Positions 38,101-60,805 of a stretch of DNA of 64,000 nt are shown in pieces. The notes beneath the pieces were generated by a model. It was given only the letters and a program-made list of their open reading frames with translations. It made no database searches and had not been told where the DNA came from. The stretch lies in the NCBI GenBank assembly GCA_977016875.1, contig CDRNST010000088.1, forward strand, positions 1,240,001-1,304,000, read 5' to 3'. This DNA comes from Pavona decussata. Its lineage: Eukaryota. Position numbers and translations under genes: made by a program. Numbering within the stretch: the first letter of the stretch is position 1; the number at the start of each line of letters is the position of its first letter.

Positions 38101-41100
38101 TTCATCCGTGATCTTGGCCCACGAGGTCATAGACTGATTTAGTTGCCAAATTTTCGGTTAAACAAAACTAACCTTGAGGCACTCAGGTTAGCCTAAAAAA
38201 CACTCCGGTTAGCCTAAAGAACACTCCAGTTAGCCTAAATAGCACTTAGGTTAGCTTAAATAGCTCCCCGGTTAGCTTAACGGGTAGCAGTTTATGTTGG
38301 GGTTTTTCATGCCTCGCATGTTTCGTTCATGTTTACAATATGCGATCAAGATGTGCGAGGCATTCCTCACGGCCCGAAAACAAAGAACGCGACCGAGAAT
38401 TTAAAGAATTTGATAACACGACAGAAAACGTAACTCGTACCAGCGGAGTACAAAAAATGAGACCGAGAACAATAACTCATGGCCCGAAGTCTTATCTCTC
38501 GGCCGATCACGACCCCAAAGAGAAAAAAGAATTTGATAATGCTACCGAAACCTTAACTCGGTCTGCCTTACGGCCCGAGTAATAAAACTGATTGTGTGGA
38601 GTGGTACTTAGACATAGAGGGGTTTCACAGTAATTCAAATTTTCACAGATGTGAACAAAAATTGGGCAGATCCAGGGTACTGACTTTAAAATCCTTTAGC
38701 ACATACTGTAACATTTCTAAAATGTAATTCATGACCACAACTTGAATCTACAGGTACATGCATGACCTTTGTTAAGGCTTTTTAAAGCTTCTAAGAAACT
38801 ATTCATGATATCTGAGCTTCAAGGAATGCAGACAAAAATCAGTGTGACATCCTCAACACAATATTCATTGCTAGACCTTGTTATTTTTACACTTTCAGGT
38901 TTTTTTCAAAAGTAAATGGCAAAAATCTCCTCATGCTATAATCAGATTCATGTACTTTTTTCCAGTAGAGTCCAACATGGCATGACTGAAATATAAGGTG
39001 CCAGTGTAAAGTCTGTTTATTTACTTGCTATATGTACTTCAGCTGCTATCAGACAGATACATGTAGCATTGAAGTTATTTGGAGTGGAAGGTATAGAGCA
39101 ATGAGATATCTGGAAAACTTGTACTGTTTATATTTAGCACCAACCGACCTGCCTCAACAAAAATTATATGTACATGTATGTATGCCGGTTTGTATGTATG
39201 TATGTATGTATAATGTTGAGGATATGACATATAAATACCCAGGTCAAAACAAACAATTTTGATGAAGCAACAAGTTTTTATACTGTAAAATCAAAGGATA
39301 CTTACCATGGTCCATACATGAAGTCCCACTGATAATGCTAAGTACAATATTGAGATTATTATGGTTGTCTTGAACTTCCTTATAAGGAGTGACACCAATC
39401 CAGCTTGAAAAATGTAAGTGTTAAAAAACACCAAAAATACCACGATGATTGCAAAGATAATACAGAGGTCTTGAATTCTGCCAAGAAGAAAAAAGAAAAA
39501 AACAGACAGTTTGACAGAAAAAATAAATGATACTCAAAAGCTACCCAGTTTATTAGTGCAAAAGTGTATTCATGTATTAAAAATTGCCCTTAATTCCTTA
39601 ATTTGCTAATGCCAAATGAAGACTTAATTTCAACCAAATTGTTAATATTTTGATAGCAACAGCCATTTGTTTTGTTGTCTAACAGTGCTGTACAACTGAA
39701 GCTTAGACAAGGTTTTCCAGCATAAACCAACTAGGAATAATACTACACTTCAAGCATTATTAGCTCTCTTTAATGAATGACAAGATCCAATTATCACTTT
39801 AAGATGTAGTAGTCAGAATAATTTCCTCTCAAAACTCTATACTTGTAAACCTTCTAAATTATTTTATTATTATTGGAAAATTGCATCTATGGGACCACAG
39901 AAGAGATAACAAACACCCCGACTTTCAGAGATTTAAGGTCGGACTGAAACGTTTAATTATCAAATTGAACATTATATTACATGTAGTTTTAAAAACAAGA
40001 ATTCTAATTTGTTTAAAAAGAAATGGATCTTTCCACCTTCTCTATTATTCACCTAAGGATATTTTTTCTGTGTAATGTTTTTAATATTTCTCTTTAATTT
40101 TTGGACTAGCTTTTGGACTCTTTTTAGCATGTTTAATTTTGTCTGATTTTTTTAGCATGTTTAATTTTGTTTGTCAATTGTCAATAATATTTACTGTATT
40201 GTAATTATTATTATAAAATCAGTTTTGAATTTGTTTAAAAAAAACTAGGAATACGTGTATTACTGCTGCCCCCAACCAACTGGATGGGATGGTACATTGT
40301 AACCCACTGGATCTTGCTGGTTTTGATAACAGTTTATTATTACAGTCTCCAATAAAAAAAGAATGAGGAAATGCCAGCGATTCGCAAGAACACAGTCTCT
40401 TTTACTGATGTTTCCAGACTTTAATAAGGTTTAACTTGTCTCTCAACACCGTGAGAACTAAAGATTAAAATGTTTACAAATTACTCAACTGTACAAGATT
40501 ACGCGGATGAAAAATAATTGTTGCGCTAAACAAAAGGTAAAAATTACAATTTACGCAAATGGATAAAAAACAACTAAATGAAAACGCTAAGTACAGTGAC
40601 ATTGACTTGCATTAATATAAATGAAAATTAGAAAACAATACAAAGCAACAAAACTTAAGTTACAAGCGTCGCTAAGTACGCGTACGCTAATTGAAACATT
40701 AACTCGTAATAACATAAGCAGCGAAAATATTTACCTTGGTGCTGCCTTCGAATAACTGGAACGATAGTTTCTACTTTAGCTTGGTAGACTTTAACTTGAA
40801 CTTTCTTGCACTTTGTTGCACTTAAAAACCTTAACTTAACTTGGACTTTTACTTACTTCTTGAACTTGCTTACGACTTGTGACTTGTGACGAAAAAACTG
40901 AAACAGTTTGACTTTTTACTTAACTTGCGCTGTCGCGTGCCCTGTCGTGATCGTGTCGTGATCGGCAAGAGCGCGGGCTATTTAAATTACGCGCTTTCTA
41001 GAAACTTCTAGATAGTTCTACAAAAGACTAAAAGCATTACTTACGGAAAACCATTACTTAAATAAGCCGATTCCTAAAATAAATTACCGGCCTTTCTTAA

Positions 41101-44100
41101 ACAAATAACAACTTGATAAAACGTTAACAATATAAACAAATGCCGTGACTCTCACGGTTTCTTGCGGTAGCTACACTCCCACCAAATTATTAATGATTAT
41201 CTGAGAGAACCTTCACAAAATCATGAATAATTTCACGATATCACTGAGATTTGAAACTACTTTAATTTGGATCAGCGCCTTCTAAGAGAAGAACCACTTT
41301 CTGGATCGGCCTTTCGATCACGGATGATTGGGAATTGTTTCTCTCCTTCTCGGAACCTTTAACACCCAGCTTGATTCTGACCGAGCGAACGAGACCATCT
41401 TTATCTGGCGTTGTGTCCATAATCTTGCCAAGGGGCCACTCATTTCGTGAGGTCTCATGTTGCACGATGACGATATCTCCAATCTTCAGATTTCTTCTTG
41501 GTACTGACCATTTTTGCCTTGAATTTAAGGTGAGGAGATACTCTTTTCGCCATCTACCCCAAAACTGCTCTGCAAGATATTGTACCTTTCGCCATCGCTT
41601 TCGGGCGTAGATATCTTCTTGAACGAAATTTCCTGGTGGCGGGGAGATTAACGTGTTCTTCATGGTCAACAGATGATTTGGAGTTAGAGGCTCTAAACTC
41701 TTGGGGTCATTCAGGGTTTGGCAGGTCAATGGGCGGCTGTTGATGATCGCCATAACTTCATAGAAAAAGGTGCGAAGAGATGACGTGTCAAGTCTTCCCT
41801 TGAAATCTGTGAGAATATCATTGAGGATGCTTCTGGTTGTCCTCATTTGCCTTTCCCATACTCCTCCCCGATGACTTGAATACGGAACATTCATGACGAA
41901 ATCACAGCGATTCTTCGTGAGATATGATTGAATCTTATCGCCGTCCAGCTCCTTTAGGGCACTTGCCAGTTCGTTTCTTGCTCCTACAAAGTTTGATCCT
42001 TGATCAGACCTTAGCTGCTGAACAGGTCCTCGGATGGCGATGAAGCATCTTAATGCGTTTATGAAGGCATCGGTTGTCATGTCATCCAACTCTTCTATGT
42101 GTACTGCGCGAGAGCTCATGCAAGTGAATATCACTCCATATCTCTTCAAATCTTTGCGTCCTTCTTTGACGATAAACGGACCAAAACAATCCATCCCACA
42201 ATACGTAAACGGAGGAGTGGACTCTACTCTTTCTTGGGGGAGAACAGCCATCTTTTGACCTTCAGTTGATCTCCTTTGTCGTCTACATCGCACACATTTA
42301 TGGATGTGTGAGGATACTGCGGCGGACAGGCCTAGGACCCATAGTCCATTAGAACGAATCTCATTCATAGTCATTCCTTTTCCTTGATGTCTCACCTTCT
42401 TGTGAAAATGACCAATTATCAGGTCGGTGATGTGAGAACTTCTTGGTAAGATGATCGGGTGCTTCAATTCAAACGGCAAAGTGGATTTTTCAAGTCTTCC
42501 TCCAACTCGCAGCAAGCCATGATCGTCAAGAAAGGGATCTAACTTCAGGAGAGGACTATTCTTTATGAGCCTGCAGTTTTCTCCTTGGTTGCTGAGTCTT
42601 CTTATCTCATCCTCGAAAGCTGTGCGTTGCACCTCCTTGAAGATGAGTATTTCAGCTTCTTGTCGTTCAGCTACCGATGTGATAACTGTTTTTGGCTTGT
42701 TCTTGTTTGAGAGTCTCTTTAGGTATGAAACTACTCCCACTGCCTTGGCCCAGTCGGAGAATCTTGTCATGCAGTCGACGAGGCTAAATGAACTTTTGGT
42801 TGTAGTTGCGAGGACGGTGGATCTAACTTCTGGGTCCCCAATCTGAATGGCAGGAATTCCTTCTTCACCCAATGAAATTTCTTTCTCCCACAGAAAGGCT
42901 GGTCCACTGAACCAATCAGACCCCATCAACTCCAGGACGCTTACGCCCCTGGATGCGTGGTCAGCGGGGTTGCTTTTGGTGTCGATGTACCTCCATTCCT
43001 TGGGATCTGTGTTGGACCTTATCATCTGCACTCTATTTGCAACGAACGTATGGAATCTCTTGGCCTCATTGTTGATGTACCCAAGTACTACTTTCGAATC
43101 TGTCCAGAAGTACTGCTTAAGGCTTGCGTAGTTCAATTCTTCCTTTAGCATCACGCCAATCTTTGCTGCTACAACCGCTGCTGTAAGCTCCAGTCTTGGT
43201 ATAGTGGTTATCTTCGATGGAGCAACGCGAGATTTTCCCATTACCAGTGCAACGTTAACGTTGTCGTCTTCATCTTTGACTCTCAGGTATGAGCACTGTC
43301 CGTATCCGAATGTGCTAGCATCTGAAAAATTGTGTAACTCGTAGGTCTTTCTTTGACCTGTCATCTTTGGCTCAAAACATCTTGGTATTTTCAGCTCTCT
43401 TAAACGTAGAAGATCTATCTTCCATTGCTCCCACCTTGGCCTGAGTTCTTCGGGTAGTGGATCGTCCCAACTGATGCCCTTCTGACATACTTCTTGGAGA
43501 ATCTTCTTTGCTCTTAGGACCAAGGGGGCGAGGAATCCAAGGGGGTCATAAACGGAAGCTACGGTCGACAACACACCTCTTCTAGTCAGGGGTTGATCCT
43601 TCAGGACGATGGAGAAACCAAAGCAGTCCAGCTCCACCGACCATTGCACACCGAGAACTCTTTCTATCGGGAGCTGTTCTGACGGTAGATCCAACTTGAT
43701 GTCAACTGCTCTTTCACTCTTTGGTACTGACTCGAGTACTGAACGATCGTTTGAGACGAACTTGTGTAGACGAAGGCCGCCACTTTTACAAATTTCTCGA
43801 GCGCCTTGGATAAGACCTTTTGCTTGCTCCACGGATTGTACACTGGCTAGTCCGTCATCTACGTAGAAATCATGCGTCATGAACTGGGCTGCTGCAGGGT
43901 GCACTTCTTTCTCTTGATTCGCCATGTACTTGAAGGCGTAACTGGCACAACCAGGCGATGAGGTCGCACCAAACAGATGCACTTTCATTCTGTGCTCTTT
44001 GGGTTCTTGGCTGACGTCGCCGTTTGGCCACCAGAGAAATCGAAGGTAATCTCTGTCTTCTTTGTGTACGACGAACTGATGGAACATTTTCTCCACGTCA

Positions 44101-47100
44101 CAAGTTATGGCGTAGGGATATCTTCTGAACCTGCACAGAACACCGATCAAATTATTGGTCAGGTCGGGTCCGCTGAGCAAGTGATCGTTCAGAGAAGTTC
44201 CCTTGCACTTCGCTGAACAGTCAAACACCACTCTGATTTTGTTTTTCTTTGGGTGATAGACACCATGATGCGGTATATACCACTTTACGTCTTCTCGATC
44301 AGCTGCTGGGGCTTCTTCGGCGTCTCCTCTGCTTAAAATTTCGTTCATGAACTTGATATAATCTTCTTTATACTTTACATCTTTTAGAAATCTTCGTTTC
44401 AGGTGCTCAAGTCGTGTGAGTGCAGTGGAGCGATTGTCAGGTAGTAGAGGTCGTTCCTTAAATGGTAATGGCATCTCGTAGTGTCCGCTGTCTGCTCTTT
44501 TGATGCCTTCTTCCATGATCTTTAGAAATTGCAGGTCTTCTTGAGAGGTCATTTTTCCATCTTTCTTCTCATGAAAGTCTGACTCGAGGACACGTATTAC
44601 TTCACCCATTGTTACGACTGGTACTTCTTTTACGGCGACTCTGTGGCAAAAGGATCTTCCACTGTTCACGTTAGCAGTGCCTACGATACTCCAACCGAGA
44701 TCTGTTCTGATCCCATATGGCTCATTGGACTTGCTAGCGATAACTTCTCTTGGCGTTAGTGCTTGAGAGCAGTCGTATCCGATAAGTAGACCAACGTTGC
44801 AGTCCAACAAATCTTGCATGTCGTCTTCTATTGCTCGTAGGTGATCCCATCTCTTAGCAGTGGATTTTGTAGGTATGTGACCTTCATCGGTGGGAATCAC
44901 AGTTCTTGTATATGCTGTAGGGATAGGGATCTTGAGATCTGAATTATATCCTCTTACTTGGAGACTTAAGACCTTTTCGCTGTTAACAAGTAACTCTTGA
45001 CTCGTGATGGTGCTTAATCGAAGTTTCGTCGGCTCTGTTTCTGCGCCAAGCTCGTCACAGGTTTCCTTTAGAATGAACGTAGCGTCACTCTGTGTGTCTA
45101 AGATAGCGTAGACCAGTAGTTCCTTGTCAGGTCTGGAGCTTGATGATAACCACACAGGAACTATCATTGAGGTGCTAGTAGTTGAAACACCTTGTGAAGT
45201 GTACGAAGTTGACTTGGGAACGCTCCTGGATTCACTGTCACTTCTGTCTTCTTTCTTCTCTGGGGCACTTCGGTTTTCATGGAGACAGGTGGGATGCTTC
45301 TTCTTGCACATAGAGCAAGTCAATCTTTTTCGACAATCTTTGGACGCATGACCTTTCCTCAGGCATCCGAAGCAGAGTCTGTTTTCTTTGATGAACTCGA
45401 GTCTTTTCTCGAGTGCTTCAGTCTTGAACTTTAAACAAGCATCTAAGTGATGATCTGTCTTCTTACAGAATGTGCATTCCACCTGTTGTCTTAGATCTCC
45501 CTTTGGCTCTTTTAAATTTTCTTCAGTTGTCTTGGCGGAGAAGATAGTCTTGTTCCCTTTGATATCTTTGTTTCTTTGTCCCTTGTGTACGTTGTCTGAC
45601 ATTTCTAACTCCTTCACAGCGTTGCAGGAAGAAATTGGGTTGCACACCAGATCGGCTTCGGAAGTGACGAAGGTGACGAATGCCTTGAAATCCGGATACG
45701 TTTTGTGTTCTTTCAGGTGTTTATTTGCTTCTCTGTTCCATCGTGCGATGAACCAGTCCGGTAACTTGACGAGTAACTTCTGATTTTCGATGTAATCGTT
45801 TAGGACATTGAGGCCTTGTATTACTTGCATTGCGGTTAGCACGCTTGATAGGAAATCAGCAAACTTCCTGAGGCCTTGATGATCTCTAGCACCGATCTTC
45901 GGCCATCGTTGTAACTTATCTCTGTAAGCCTTTGTTATGATGAAGGGGTGACCAAACCTCTCATCTAAGATGCTCCACGCCCTTTCGTACGCTTCTGAGG
46001 AGTTTTGCAGGAAGAGACCACTAATAGCTTCTCTGGCGGCTCCACCAACGTATCGTTTCAAATAGTACATCTTATCACTTGGCGGCAAGGCTTTTCGGTC
46101 AATTAGAGCATGGAAACAGGACTTCCAGTCTGGATACTGAATAGGTTCACCACTGAAGACAGTTGGCTCAGGTACTGGGAGGCGGCTTAAACTAATTGAG
46201 TCAGTTATTGCGGTGATAATCGCGGCGGTACCGTCTGCTTTTGGTGTTGAATCTTGGCAATCAGAGGACCGGCGTTGATCAACTTGACCATGTGGGAGTT
46301 GATTGCTTTCATCAAAAAGGTACAACTGATTTACTTGCTGAGAGTGCTGATTGGACTGCGATAGCGGTCTGGGAGCATTTACAACTGTCGTCGAATCTTT
46401 GATCGGTATAGGCTGAGGGAAAGATGTTGGAGTTGTCTCACGGTTTGTCTGTAGAGTCGGAGGTGTGTGTAAGATATGATCTTCAATGGAATCCGCGTCG
46501 TCTTCCGGTTGTTCGACTTCTTCATATACCATTAACCTGGCTCTTGCTATCTCTATCTGTTTCTTCACTTCCATTTGTTCCAACTCTAGTTTTCTCCGCG
46601 CGAGTTCGTTCTCCATTTTCGCTGTTTCCGCTCTAAATTGCGCTTCCATTTTCGCTGTTTCTTCTTTGAGTTGCGCTTCCATCTTCGCTGTTTCTTCCTT
46701 ATACTTCGCCTCTTCTTGTAGAGCGTCGAACTCGGCTTGTTTCGCGGCCAGTTCTGCAGCTGCATCAGCCTTCTTTAAGTCTATGGAGGATGCCCTTGAA
46801 GATCTGCTGGCTCTTGACCTTGCGGATGCTTTACTGTAGACTGACCTTTTGTCCTCACCGTTGCGTGACTGTTCCTTTCTGAAGGACTGTCGATCGATTT
46901 GATGTTGTAGATTGCGTGTCTCTGCGTCGCAGGTGTCCACCATGCGGAGGATTTCTTGTCGTGGTAGTCGTATTTGTCGAAGCTTCTCGTAGACTTTGTG
47001 GACATTTTCGCAGTGAGTTTGTAGGTTGGAGATCCTTTCGTCTTTCTCCCCTTGCGATGTTGGTGCTTCACTGGCCAAGAACGTTTCGATTACCGTGACT

Positions 47101-50100
47101 TCCTTTTTCCATGTTTCGTAAACTCCGTTGAATTTCTTAAGTAGGCGATCTTCTTCTTTTTCTTTTTCTTCGCGGCGACATTCTTGATACGCCTGACCCT
47201 TTTCGGTTAAAGTTCGCTCTCGAGTACTTCTTGGATGTTCTTCGTGTTGACTTTCGATAGAGTCCGTGAGCACGCTTTTATCTCCATTTTCCTTGTCGAC
47301 CGATAACGATAGCGGCTCCTCAACGGGGATTTCTGAATCGGACATTTTACGCTAAATATACGCTTAACCTTCTTAACTTTAAATATAGTTATATAGTAAT
47401 AGCACAGTCGACTTGTATTAAAATAATTCGAGCGAACGAACTGTGCGATGTTTTTAAAATGTACTTAGATTTAATAAATGGGAAATAAATATGCGACAAA
47501 CTTTAAAGTACTCTTCCAAGTTACACTAAATTAACTACTTCAAGATCTGTTTCTTTCTACGGTAGTAAGGCTTCTTAACTTCAATAGTGTCTCTTAGAAT
47601 TCAAACGTTTCAACGTAAATAAAGACTTCTTTAACTTATAATATACTGTATTTACTGCGAAATCCGCGTGCGAAACGTTGATTCTTGACCTTTGGACTTG
47701 TTTACATCGCTTCACTCGGTTGGTCACGCGCAATCATCTCGTTGGTCGACCTGGTCACGCGCCATCACCACCGGCGTGAATTTGCGTCGTGATTTTTGAT
47801 GTTTGGTTGCACCAAGTTCTCACTGTCGCTCCAGCGATTCGCAAGAACACAGTCTCTTTTACTGATGTTTCCAGACTTTAATAAGGTTTAACTTGTCTCT
47901 CAACACCGTGAGAACTAAAGATTAAAATGTTTACAAATTACTCAACTGTACAAGATTACGCGGATGAAAAATAATTGTTGCGCTAAACAAAAGGTAAAAA
48001 TTACAATTTACGCAAATGGATAAAAAACAACTAAATGAAAACGCTAAGTACAGTGACATTGACTTGCGTTAATATAAATGAAAATTAGAAAACAATACAA
48101 AGCAACAAAACTTAAGTTACAAGCGTCGCTAAGTACGCGTACGCTAATTGAAACATTAACTCGTAATAACATAAGCAGCGAAAATATTTACCTTGGTGCT
48201 GCCTTCGAATAACTGGAACGATAGTTTCTACTTTAGCTTGGTAGACTTTAACTTGAACTTTCTTGCACTTTGTTGCACTTAAAAACCTTAACTTAACTTG
48301 GACTTTTACTTACTTCTTGAACTTGCTTACGACTTGTGACTTGTGACGAAAAAACTGAAACAGTTTGACCTTTTACTTAACTTGCGCTGTCGCGTGCCCT
48401 GTCGTGATCGTGTCGTGATCGGCAAGAGCGCGGGCTATTTAAATTACGCGCTTTCTAGAAACTTCTAGATAGTTCTACGAAAGACTAAAAGCATTACTTA
48501 CGGAAAACCATTACTTAAATAAGCCGATTCCTAAAATAAATTACCGGCCTTTCTTAAACAAATAACAACTTGATAAAACGTTAACAATATAAACAAATGC
48601 CGTGACTCTCACGGTTTCTTGCGGTAGCTACATACGTGTATTACTGCTGCCCCCAACCAACTGGATGGGATGGTACATTGTAACCCACTGGATCTTGCTG
48701 GTTTTGATAACAGTTTATTATTACAGTCTCCAATAAAAAAAGAATGAGGAAATGCCGAGCAAAGTTTCTTGACCAATGAAACAACGCAATGGCAGGGCCA
48801 GGCTTGAAACATGGATCTTCAGATTGAAAGTATGACACATAAGCCACTACACAACTACGCTCTTACGAGCTAAATTAATTAAAATGAACCAAAACAAATT
48901 AACAACTACTAGATGTGACACGCTGTTGTGCCTTGTTCAACAAAAATTGGGACTTCAAAGTTGTACCAGACCTTTGAGTAACACAATCCAGCACCATCTT
49001 TGAGTGACCAATCCAAAACATCAACAACAACAAAAGAAACAAACAAACAAAAAACACTAAAAAGTAAAGCCTACTTCTTGTACCCAATCCATGACAAAAT
49101 AATGGTAAATAAAACAAGACTCTTTCATAGCTTTCAAATGGTGCTCAATTTAGAAAATCAAATCATAAATAACTGTGATATTATAAAATTGATTTTTGAA
49201 CATTTCCATTTTCTTATTACTGTAAGTTCCCACCCAAAACATCAGTAAGAGAATTTTTGAAGAAACATAGGGGAGGGAGGGAGGGAGGGAGGGAGGGAGG
49301 GGGGATTAACATTCCTAGCCCCCCTCTCTCTCCAGCTCTGCTGTCTCTACCAGTTTGTACATGGGCGTTATGTACATGTACATGTAATAGTAGTAACAAG
49401 AAGACAACATTTGACAAGAAATTTAAACTGTAAGATGCACAAAATTTACTGTTATGGAATTTTGGCAGCTGTTATTCAATAATACGTTTGTTAGCTCTAC
49501 AAGCTTATGAGTAAGCAGCTTAATACAATTTTTATATTAAGCTGCTTACTTATTGCAAACAAGACATTTCACCCATCCTTACAATGCAATAACCCAGCTT
49601 TATTTGTAGGAATTTTTTACCCAAGTTGAACAAAAGAGCACTTGATGTACACGTATACCCCAATGAATAAATGAGAGCTACTGATTCAGTGTATATACAT
49701 GGATTCTTGGCAGTTACTTAGGGATTATTATATGATGGGTGACTCAGTTTTCAATCTATCACAGATGAAGCTTACACTGCAGAAACGAACTTGTAATTTC
49801 CAATTCCCAATCAAAAACCATGCCACACAGGATCATAATTAAGGTGACAAACTGCATAACAATTACTAAAATCCTATTATTGCCTTATAATGTGGACCCA
49901 ATATGTATGTCATAATTATTAGGTATGCATCTAATATAAACACTGTTAGAAATGTTGTATTAAAGGGGGGAAAAGGGGGTTCCTTTATGATTTTAGCAGA
50001 AAAATAAGCAACAAAGTTATCACAACATGCTACTATGCCACAATGAAAATAGAAATATTAATCTGTAAAAGATCAGATATTTTTAGCATGCTCATCTGCC

Positions 50101-60761: not shown

Positions 60762-60805
60762 TAGCCTTCCGCCCCCCACCCCCAAGAGAGCTTGCTCGCA
60801 GGCTA
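60762..60805. mobile_element. 44-bp deleted TAGCCT..AGGCTA mini-MITE with 8-bp TSD, inserted in a family B repeat
   Basis: AGTTTAAT at 60754-60761 and 60806-60813; same family as 37150. Confidence 0.7.

Follow-up and report, generated by a model that had tools for sequence, protein, structure and literature searches.

The BEL/Pao retrotransposon on the minus strand of the window (the whole 64,000-nt stretch of Pavona decussata DNA analysed here) appears to prime its own reverse transcription. Its sequence and that of its relatives are best explained by minus-strand DNA synthesis being primed, as in Tf1, by the 5' end of the element's own genomic RNA, a reading to which we assign a probability of roughly 80%. 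On the sense (minus) strand the 5' LTR ends in ...GCTGGAGCGACA at 47824 and is directly followed by GTGAGAACT (47823-47815), whose exact complement (9/9), AGTTCTCAC, lies inside the same LTR at 47916-47908, leaving a loop of 84 nt between the two words. The original prediction had the complementarity, the positions and the loop right, and we found that such a match is expected by chance in about 5 of 10,000 cases (the word turned up 100 times when the 189 nt upstream of the LTR end were shuffled 200,000 times; P ~5e-4, without correction for the choice of position). The 9-mer or its complement occurs five times in the window against 0.42 expected, three of these occurrences being the two LTRs and the post-LTR site. 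Self-priming is further supported by comparison with relatives, where the LTR word and the post-LTR word always change together, as would be expected if one served as primer on the other.

The assignment to BEL/Pao, already made in the original prediction, agrees with the Pfam domains along the single intact 2027-aa ORF, which follow one another in the order DUF1759, RVT_1, Peptidase_A17, rve and DUF5641. The element thus has a DUF1759-type gag, RT followed by IN, the Pao-specific Peptidase_A17 and DUF5641, the set that characterises BEL/Pao, and the proteins nearest to the ORF carry the same domains. Its LTR ends (TGTAGC...GCGACA) and polypurine tract TTGGTGGGAG are also of BEL/Pao type, as are the 5-bp target-site duplications (TSDs) of six relatives; the tract or a near variant of it is present at 18 loci, in 15 of them exactly. 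Membership of the Tf1/sushi phylogenetic group (Ty3/gypsy chromoviruses) was rejected, as domains and nearest relatives are those of BEL/Pao: the likeness to Tf1 would be one of mechanism, not of membership. A self-priming cut would need RNase H, which makes the region of the ORF bearing RT and RNase H relevant; in an alignment of 11 proteins the residues DAS..E..D..D are invariant, and these probably represent the RNase H active site.

Self-BLAST pairs the two LTRs over 802 nt at 99.6% identity (47831-48632 with 40374-41175). The last seven nucleotides, AGCGACA, are absent from the 3' LTR, where a copy of about 125 nt of the 5' flank stands instead, ending in ACGTA, a probable target-site duplication. 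Since the 3' LTR is truncated and identity stops at 47831/40374, the LTR end ..GCGACA given by the original prediction is not readable from the window copy alone; its position at 47824 nevertheless holds, because in a relative 92% identical (L001) the LTR end ...GGAGCTACA adjoins the TSD ATGAT, and its 5' LTR is followed by the same GTGAGAACT. The window copy is intact and, judging from the near identity of its LTRs, young, and it may therefore still be active.

Table 1. Features of the element and of its proposed priming region (window coordinates).
Feature	Position	Strand	Remarks
5' LTR, 809 nt, TGTAGC...AGCGACA	47824..48632	-	self-BLAST; starts after the 5' flank ...ACGTA; end by homology with L001
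Proposed self-primer word AGTTCTCAC, taken as transcript nt 1-9 (start of R)	47908..47916	-	exact complement of 47823-47815
Invariant G after the word	47907..47907	-	putative RNase H cut between C47908 and G47907
ATTAAA poly(A) signal inside R	47877..47882	-	most relatives shown have AATAAA/ATTAAA at the corresponding position
Predicted cleavage/poly(A) site, CA of conserved CATCAGTA; predicted R/U5 border	47863..47864	-	
Predicted U5, 39 nt	47824..47862	-	spans predicted poly(A) site to LTR end
Proposed primer-binding site GTGAGAACT	47815..47823	-	flush with the LTR end
gag-pol ORF, intact, 2027 aa, BEL/Pao type	41262..47345	-	contains RT and the RNase H-bearing region
Polypurine tract TTGGTGGGAG	41176..41185	-	directly before the 3' LTR
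3' LTR without its last 7 nt	40374..41175	-	self-BLAST; second copy of the word at 40459-40451
5'-flank copy (= 48632-48760) joined to the truncated 3' LTR	40251..40378	-	ends in ACGTA

The comparison rests on 29 elements, the window copy and 28 relatives from corals, a sea star, an acorn worm and fish, which together display 16 distinct pairs of complementary words. In relatives at 36-92% protein identity both words, post-LTR and LTR, are present and always complementary, so that the co-variation test proposed with the original prediction came out in its favour. The relatives fetched by protein similarity alone, which with the window copy form the unbiased set (window and L001-L008), each have, inside the LTR and 59-126 nt further upstream, a word complementary to the one that follows the LTR; four word pairs occur among them (AGTTCTCAC, AGATCTCAC, AGATCTTAC and AGCTCTTAC), and in six the LTR end is fixed independently by 5-bp TSDs (L001 ATGAT, L002 ATCAG, L003 CTACA, L006 TGATG, L007 GATGT, L008 GTAAG). 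Pairing extends over 7-11 nt, and the binding site always starts with GT, directly after an LTR-terminal ACA or ATA. In a 20-sequence alignment, compensatory double changes affect seven of the nine base pairs and none is broken, the latter partly by selection of the sample, since L019-L070 were found by requiring complementarity. On the sense strand of 826 kb of related loci, 22 A[CT]A/GT sites (slash at the LTR end) have a 9-mer complement 31-220 nt upstream against 1.3 expected, versus 2 against 1.1 expected on the antisense strand of the same 826 kb. The double changes and this excess indicate that the pairing is under selection.

In the mechanism that we propose, transcription would start at A47916 in the 5' LTR, and the first nine nucleotides of the RNA, AGUUCUCAC, would pair with GUGAGAACU (47823-47815), closing the R-U5 loop. 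The element's RNase H would then cut after C9, before the invariant G10, and the 3'-OH of the resulting 9-nt fragment would be extended, the first DNA base copying the last base of the LTR; the 3' end of the primer must pair at the binding site because the LTR end marks the start of minus-strand synthesis. In later plus-strand synthesis the RNA primer would serve as template for the primer-binding site, so that a change in the LTR word could pass into that site and yield perfect co-variation.

If R starts at the word, the R-U5 layout is a normal one, because the interval from the word to the LTR end contains the poly(A) signal, the conserved CATCAGTA and a GT-rich stretch (TGTGTTC after CATCAGTA in the window element). 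The ATTAAA signal is found, as originally described, 35 nt from A47916 (47882-47877, nt 35-40 counted from that A), and an ATCAGT motif located 10-20 nt past the poly(A) signal is kept in corals, sea star and acorn worm. The predicted poly(A) site at 47863 corresponds to a position near 40406 in the 3' LTR. Two further searches concerned transcripts: the Logan contigs L098-L107 were discarded as transcript evidence, being LTR-collapsed circular DNA contigs, and no contig that ends in poly(A) after R, or that clearly derives from RNA, was found.

Co-variation proves pairing, not priming, and the helix might instead be a selected long-range structure of R-U5 (with a role in packaging or dimerisation, or in hiding the 5' poly(A) signal), the primer being something else. 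The 5' poly(A) signal does lie inside the closed loop. In favour of self-priming, the word/binding-site helix is the only consensus structure that RNAalifold returns for 20 elements, and the minimum-energy fold of 47916-47805 contains seven of the nine word pairs; against it, the region as a whole folds barely better than shuffled sequences do (z = -1.8). A U5 hairpin beside the binding site appears in the single-sequence fold, and RNAalifold, which supports the terminal helix alone, finds no conserved inner structure such as a U5-IR-like stem in the R-U5 loop. An Rfam scan of 47300-48700 gave no match. We consider a purely structural role improbable: in every element the 3' arm abuts the LTR end exactly, at a position that is set by the 3' end of a primer, no other conserved primer site stands downstream, and a length of 7-11 bp together with the invariant AC/G (slash at the proposed cut) better fits a primer with a cut site.

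The two ends of the word also bear on where such a primer would come from. A47916 sits in the initiator-like context TTTAGTTC, and this feature of the original prediction recurs across relatives. Among 22 distinct contexts, 21 have pairing that starts at an A after pyrimidines (TTTC or TTTT, then AGTTY); position +1 is A in 21 of the 22, +2 is G in 17, +3 is T or A in 20, and a pyrimidine occupies +4 in 19 and +5 in 20. The start at the initiator-like A holds whatever the length of the pairing (7-11 nt), as would be expected if the transcript began there. At its other end the word closes with an invariant AC followed by an invariant G (A8, C9 and G10 in all 20 aligned elements, and in 22/22 contexts), a candidate RNase H cut site. 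In a variant of self-priming, the cut would release the primer from the word's copy in the 3' R or from a second RNA packaged alongside, and the word would then not have to be the first base of the transcript. R stands at both ends of the RNA, each RNA thus carrying the word twice (the second at 40459-40451 in the 3' LTR), and the copies are indistinguishable by sequence; however, this variant leaves the constant start of pairing at an initiator-like A unexplained, and we give it as small a chance as the structural role.

Slightly less probable still is a host RNA as primer, either half a tRNA cleaved in its anticodon loop (the type used by copia and Ty5) or some other small RNA, the resemblance to the LTR then being unrelated. 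Half-tRNA primers do exist in Ty1/copia lineages (PMC6317226). In our own reading, many of the words have a U..A-C pattern that could be taken for an anticodon loop. The reading as anticodon loops of tRNA halves was rejected, since A-G at the start and A-C-G at the end are common to all the words irrespective of their middle, and a host primer would explain neither this, nor the pyrimidines before the A, nor the copy in the LTR. The longest match of the required primer to either of the window's two tRNA-Ala-like genes is 6 nt, no tRNA gene was found in 15 related loci, and we know of no match of the words to the anticodon arms of animal tRNA-Glu and tRNA-Lys beyond 6-7 nt. A conventional site fares no better: neither the window element nor its closest relatives have a TGG tRNA-type site directly after the LTR, and TGGTGCA, a tRNA-Gly-like 7-nt motif 9 nt downstream of the LTR end which the original prediction had held in reserve, is not conserved even in the closest relatives. 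The element thus appears to depart from BEL/Pao priming as described by ICTV. A host primer is unable to explain why the binding site co-varies with a word in the element's own LTR, which tracks every change over 16 pairs. The chance of a fortuitous match is negligible: although a single 9-mer in one element is weak evidence alone, different words in many lineages, the excess of paired sites and the compensatory changes refute it.

Self-priming by the element's own RNA would place it beside several known systems. In Tf1 the first 11 nt of the RNA pair with the binding site, and RNase H makes the primer by cutting between nt 11 and 12 (PMC7175516, PMC4600332). Tf1 and Tf2 of Schizosaccharomyces pombe and Tj1 of S. 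japonicus, which are Ty3/gypsy elements, likewise have a post-LTR site complementary to an LTR word at the transcript start (here a predicted start) and no tRNA-type site, whereas the window element belongs to another superfamily. The pairing is also shorter, 9 nt (range 7-11) against 11 in Tf1, and the U5 stem-loop by the helix that Tf1 requires has no conserved counterpart in the RNAalifold consensus. Self-priming has been predicted from sequence in the Tf1/sushi group of vertebrates and fungi, in the Tcn1 clade (Ty3/gypsy) and in the TAR lineage Houba/Osr-1 (Ty1/copia) (PMC6317226), on the same basis of LTR/post-LTR complementarity and a missing tRNA site; those lineages lie in the other two LTR superfamilies, and here cross-phylum co-variation is added. 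In copia, Ty5 and Osser, which use half-tRNA primers, the binding site corresponds to an internal stretch of initiator tRNA-Met (PMC6317226) and likewise does not start with TGG, but the site of the window element matches its own LTR and co-varies with the LTR word. Within BEL/Pao, the ICTV profile of Belpaoviridae describes priming by host tRNA via an 18-nt site, with tRNA-Arg or tRNA-Gly (PMC8742986), and a tRNA-Tyr primer is described for Achilles (PMC4580426). Gene content and order, TG..CA-type LTR ends, 5-bp TSDs and a polypurine tract are common to described BEL/Pao (Tas, Achilles) and to the clade studied here, which in contrast lacks the 18-nt host-tRNA site. We found no description of self-priming in BEL/Pao in the openly accessible full-text literature.

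The priming of reverse transcription is among the steps that define the life cycle of a retroelement, and it is also put to practical use by LTR-finding programs, which search for tRNA-type primer sites. Of the three LTR superfamilies, BEL/Pao has been studied least. If self-priming is correct, a third superfamily of LTR retrotransposons would join the self-primed list, all three would then contain self-primed lineages, and the ICTV account of Belpaoviridae replication would be incomplete. It would also mean that self-priming works with only 8-9 base pairs. A signature for annotation would consist of a word starting at an initiator A and ending in AC/G, then an LTR end ACA directly followed by the GT-starting complement, where tRNA-based tools would score the primer site as absent, and the 16 word pairs would provide natural compensatory variants for the study of primer/binding-site co-evolution. 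We consider it slightly more probable than not that self-priming is the normal mode of an ancient and extensive BEL/Pao clade found in cnidarians, echinoderms, hemichordates and teleost fish, with a minimal capped primer of 8-11 nt that would be set by the initiator and the AC/G cut site.

Counting against self-priming, about half of the related loci with enough upstream sequence have no clear word pair. Some of these are decayed copies, L051 with one change in each arm and L083 with LTRs only 88% alike. No relative was found in the IMG/VR viral contigs. Inverted pairs returned by an unbiased scan in L027, L058, L064, L097 and L066 (ACCAGGTTTG/CAAACCTGGT) were judged to be chance or coding sequence, a context-free scan being expected to give about 80 chance pairs in the sequence searched; L066 is kept among the 29 elements with a different 8-bp pair, AGTTTTAC. 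Finally, in a side lineage of three elements (L047, L067 and L074), an LTR word ending in ..GGGACCA pairs with a site that starts with TGG, and this lineage may reflect a switch between priming by tRNA and self-priming.

The sense strand of the retrotransposon is the minus strand of the window, and the word pair lies in its 5' LTR region. By self-BLAST the two LTRs match over 802 nt at 99.6% identity, and they enclose one intact ORF of 2027 aa, along which Pfam families follow in the order DUF1759, RVT_1, Peptidase_A17, rve and DUF5641. Peptidase_A17 is a Pao-specific family, and this arrangement therefore identifies the element as BEL/Pao. The closest database proteins are 92%, 71%, 70%, 69% and 67% identical to the ORF, the closest named host among the protein matches being the stony coral Oculina patagonica, followed by fish, sea star and acorn worm at 47-55%. 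These matches point to a probable coral origin for the window. A polypurine tract, TTGGTGGGAG or a near variant, adjoins the 3' LTR in 18 loci (exact in 15/18). The N-terminal, gag-proximal part of the ORF also carries a short tandem repeat.

Features of the window, on its coordinates
Feature	Position	Strand	Details
LTR pair	47831-48632 / 40374-41175	-	extent by self-BLAST
LTR word	47916-47908	-	AGTTCTCAC; TCTTT immediately before
Poly(A) signal	47882-47877	-	ATTAAA
5' LTR end	47824	-	...GCTGGAGCGACA
Post-LTR word	47823-47815	-	GTGAGAACT; flush with 5' LTR
BEL/Pao ORF	47345-41262	-	
Tandem repeat in ORF	46612-46697		33 nt, 2.6 copies, 88%
Flank copy	40251-40378		direct copy (~125 nt) of 48632-48760, just upstream of 5' LTR
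tRNA-Ala(GGC)-like sequences	824-896; 12129-12201	-	~90% identical; 11.3 kb apart
RT/GIY-YIG ORF	18462-20522	-	686 aa
GPCR ORF	26025-27131	-	intronless, 368 aa; 7tm_1, E = 6e-38
Palindromic repeat	37150-37232; 60765-60805		short, common to both places
Tandem duplication	37482-37574		46 nt; beside palindromic repeat

The two words, the 84-nt loop separating them and the poly(A) signal all stand in the sequence where the original prediction had placed them. The 9-mer or its complement occurs 5 times in the window, against 0.42 expected; when the 189 nt leading up to the LTR end were shuffled 200,000 times, the 9-mer came up 100 times. The proposed LTR end itself is not readable from the window's own LTR pair, because the last seven LTR bases (AGCGACA) are missing from the 3' LTR, whose truncated end is joined to a copy of the 5' flank. 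However, it is settled by a 92% identical relative, L001, in which the LTR terminates in ...GGAGCTACA, the 3' LTR runs into an ATGAT target-site duplication, and the 5' LTR leads into the same post-LTR word. In the window, the junction between 3' LTR and flank copy, at 40 kb, runs through a shared GG, and the flank copy ends in ACGTA, a probable 5-bp target duplication, before a new flank, TTCCTAG. This layout resembles a 125-bp 'target duplication' and may reflect aberrant integration, end repair or an assembly artefact.

For the first relatives, genomic surroundings were taken by protein similarity only and LTRs were defined by self-BLAST; in six of them a 5-bp target-site duplication independently locates the LTR end (L001 ATGAT, L002 ATCAG, L003 CTACA, L006 TGATG, L007 GATGT, L008 GTAAG). 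We found that in every relative an exact complement of the nine bases directly after the LTR lies 59-126 nt further upstream, within that LTR, bearing out the proposed co-variation. LTR word and post-LTR word are AGTTCTCAC and GTGAGAACT in the coral group (window copy and L001-L005), AGATCTCAC and GTGAGATCT in the sea star Patiria miniata (L006), AGATCTTAC and GTAAGATCT in the acorn worm Glandiceps talaboti (L007), and AGCTCTTAC and GTAAGAGCT in the cod Gadus morhua (L008), while the remainder of the LTRs is too divergent across these lineages for good alignment. The acorn worm locus has a second copy of GTAAGATCT at 9256-9264, 41 nt downstream of the first. The fallback primer site that had been suggested, TGGTGCA, is replaced in the closest relatives by TGCCCGC, TGCTGAA or TGACTGA and was discarded.

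Scanning JGI metagenome contigs with an alignment of 11 proteins gave 80 further loci at 36-75% identity. We counted A[CT]A|GT sites in 826 kb of loci, requiring that the 9-mer after the site have its complement 31-220 nt upstream: the sense strand has 22 such sites, where 1.3 would be expected, and the antisense strand has 2, where 1.1 would be expected. The full table, which takes in contigs starting near the word and pairings of 7-8 nt, holds 29 elements with 16 different words, among them AGTTTCGAC, AGTTTTTAC, AGATTTTAC, AGTGTTTAC, AATCGTTTGAC, AATTCGTTTAC, AGTATTAC and AGTCTTAC. In 20 word-to-binding-site segments, RNAalifold recovers the helix of LTR word and binding site as the sole consensus structure, with compensatory double changes at 7/9 pairs and no pair broken, the latter partly by selection because L019-L070 were found by asking for complementarity; the window copy and L001-L008 were chosen independently of it. 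In an RT tree of 89 loci the signature occurs in both halves. About half of the related loci show no clear word pair; several such rows of the tree are identical or nearly so to signature rows, and absence is therefore often detection failure or decay. A 71% identical relative (L051, ~120-215), with word AGTTCTCAA and site GTGAGAAGT, has one non-compensatory substitution per arm and looks like a decayed copy. Many metagenome/Logan contigs are LTR-collapsed 'circles' of equal length and different rotations with terminal overlaps of 30-127 nt (L012, L035-L037, L046, L049, L053, L054, L059, L062, L066, L070, L078, L079, L087, L098-L103), and should be read neither as circular DNA nor as transcripts.

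The elements share a common anatomy. Complementarity starts at an A in 21 of 22 distinct contexts, irrespective of pairing length (8, 9, 10 or 11 nt). T-T-T-C/T stands before this A, and G (17/22), T or A (20/22) and two pyrimidines (19/22 and 20/22) come after it, a context that matches the metazoan initiator (YYANWYY, TCAGTY). In all elements the LTR word ends in AC with G next, the LTR terminates in ACA or ATA, and the binding site starts with GT. Between the arms follow AATAAA or ATTAAA (in most elements shown), a conserved CATCAGTA and a GT-rich stretch. If the RNA starts at the word, the window copy would have an ordinary layout, with R of ~54 nt and U5 of ~39 nt. In the minimum-energy fold of 47916-47805, 7 of the 9 pairs form and a U5 hairpin sits beside the binding site, but the stability of this fold exceeds that of shuffles only marginally (z = -1.8); RNAalifold found no conservation of inner structures between the arms across the aligned elements.

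Since minus-strand synthesis begins at the LTR border, the primer 3' end must read ...AGTTCTCAC in corals and ...AGATCTTAC in the acorn worm, and in each lineage exactly the required sequence is present in the element's own LTR. Tf1-like self-priming, where the element's own RNA 5' end serves as primer, fits all observations, and from these comparisons we give it a probability of about 0.8. The transcript would start at the word and anneal to the binding site through its first 9 nt; cleavage is predicted after C9, just before the invariant G10, which would leave a 9-nt fragment for extension as primer. During plus-strand synthesis the RNA primer would then serve as template for the new binding site, so that a change in the LTR word could reach this site within two cycles and thereby produce the co-variation seen; we infer this transfer from the standard reverse-transcription scheme.

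A purely structural helix, with another primer in use, is improbable: one arm lies flush with the LTR end, and there is no other conserved site. Equally improbable is a primer cut from the 3' copy of R or from a second RNA, which is a variant of self-priming and does not contradict it. Slightly less credible still is a primer of host origin, for instance a tRNA half, as host RNA of any kind leaves unexplained that the LTR word tracks each change of the binding site. A host tRNA primer would leave a site starting with TGG, and none is present at the LTR end. Pairing by chance, set beside the sense-strand excess, is negligible. The two tRNA-Ala(GGC)-like sequences in the window, which may represent tRNA pseudogenes or heads of a tRNA-derived SINE, match the primer site over at most 6 nt.

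In Tf1, the binding site anneals to nt 1-11 of the RNA, and RNase H cleavage falls between nt 11 and 12 (PMC7175516, PMC4600332). Tf1 and Tf2 are established self-primers. Self-priming has likewise been inferred in Tj1, the Tf1/sushi group and Tcn1 (all Ty3/gypsy), and in the TAR lineage of Ty1/copia it is a prediction (PMC6317226, PMC4600332). The window element would work like Tf1, but lies outside the Tf1/sushi group. BEL/Pao elements are described with an 18-nt site complementary to tRNA-Arg or tRNA-Gly (PMC8742986), and Achilles with a tRNA-Tyr site (PMC4580426). We found no description of self-priming in BEL/Pao in the open full-text literature.

Other candidate word pairs occur among the relatives. 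In L047 (~2900-3000), L067 and L074, TGGTCCCGAG directly follows ..GTATAT; in the L047 lineage its exact 10-nt complement, CTCGGGACCA, lies 71 nt upstream and ends in ..ACCA, like a tRNA 3' end. This might be a tRNA-mimicking self-primer, or else a tRNA site whose upstream complement is a chance match or has a structural role. The diverged copies L048 and L049 share AGCTTGCCC in a TTTGT|AG context and, 118-121 nt downstream, GGGCAAGCT after ..CGTTGT; these may be one more word pair, in which the LTR ends differently and AC|G is absent.

Elsewhere in the window, an ORF combines reverse transcriptase with a C-terminal GIY-YIG nuclease domain, the hallmark of Penelope-like elements; GC skew peaks strongly over the same stretch, reaching 0.29 at 18-20 kb. 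A rhodopsin-family GPCR ORF is also present, and L001 likewise adjoins 7tm_1 genes. Finally, the palindromic repeat and the neighbouring tandem duplication may together represent a small MITE-like element.
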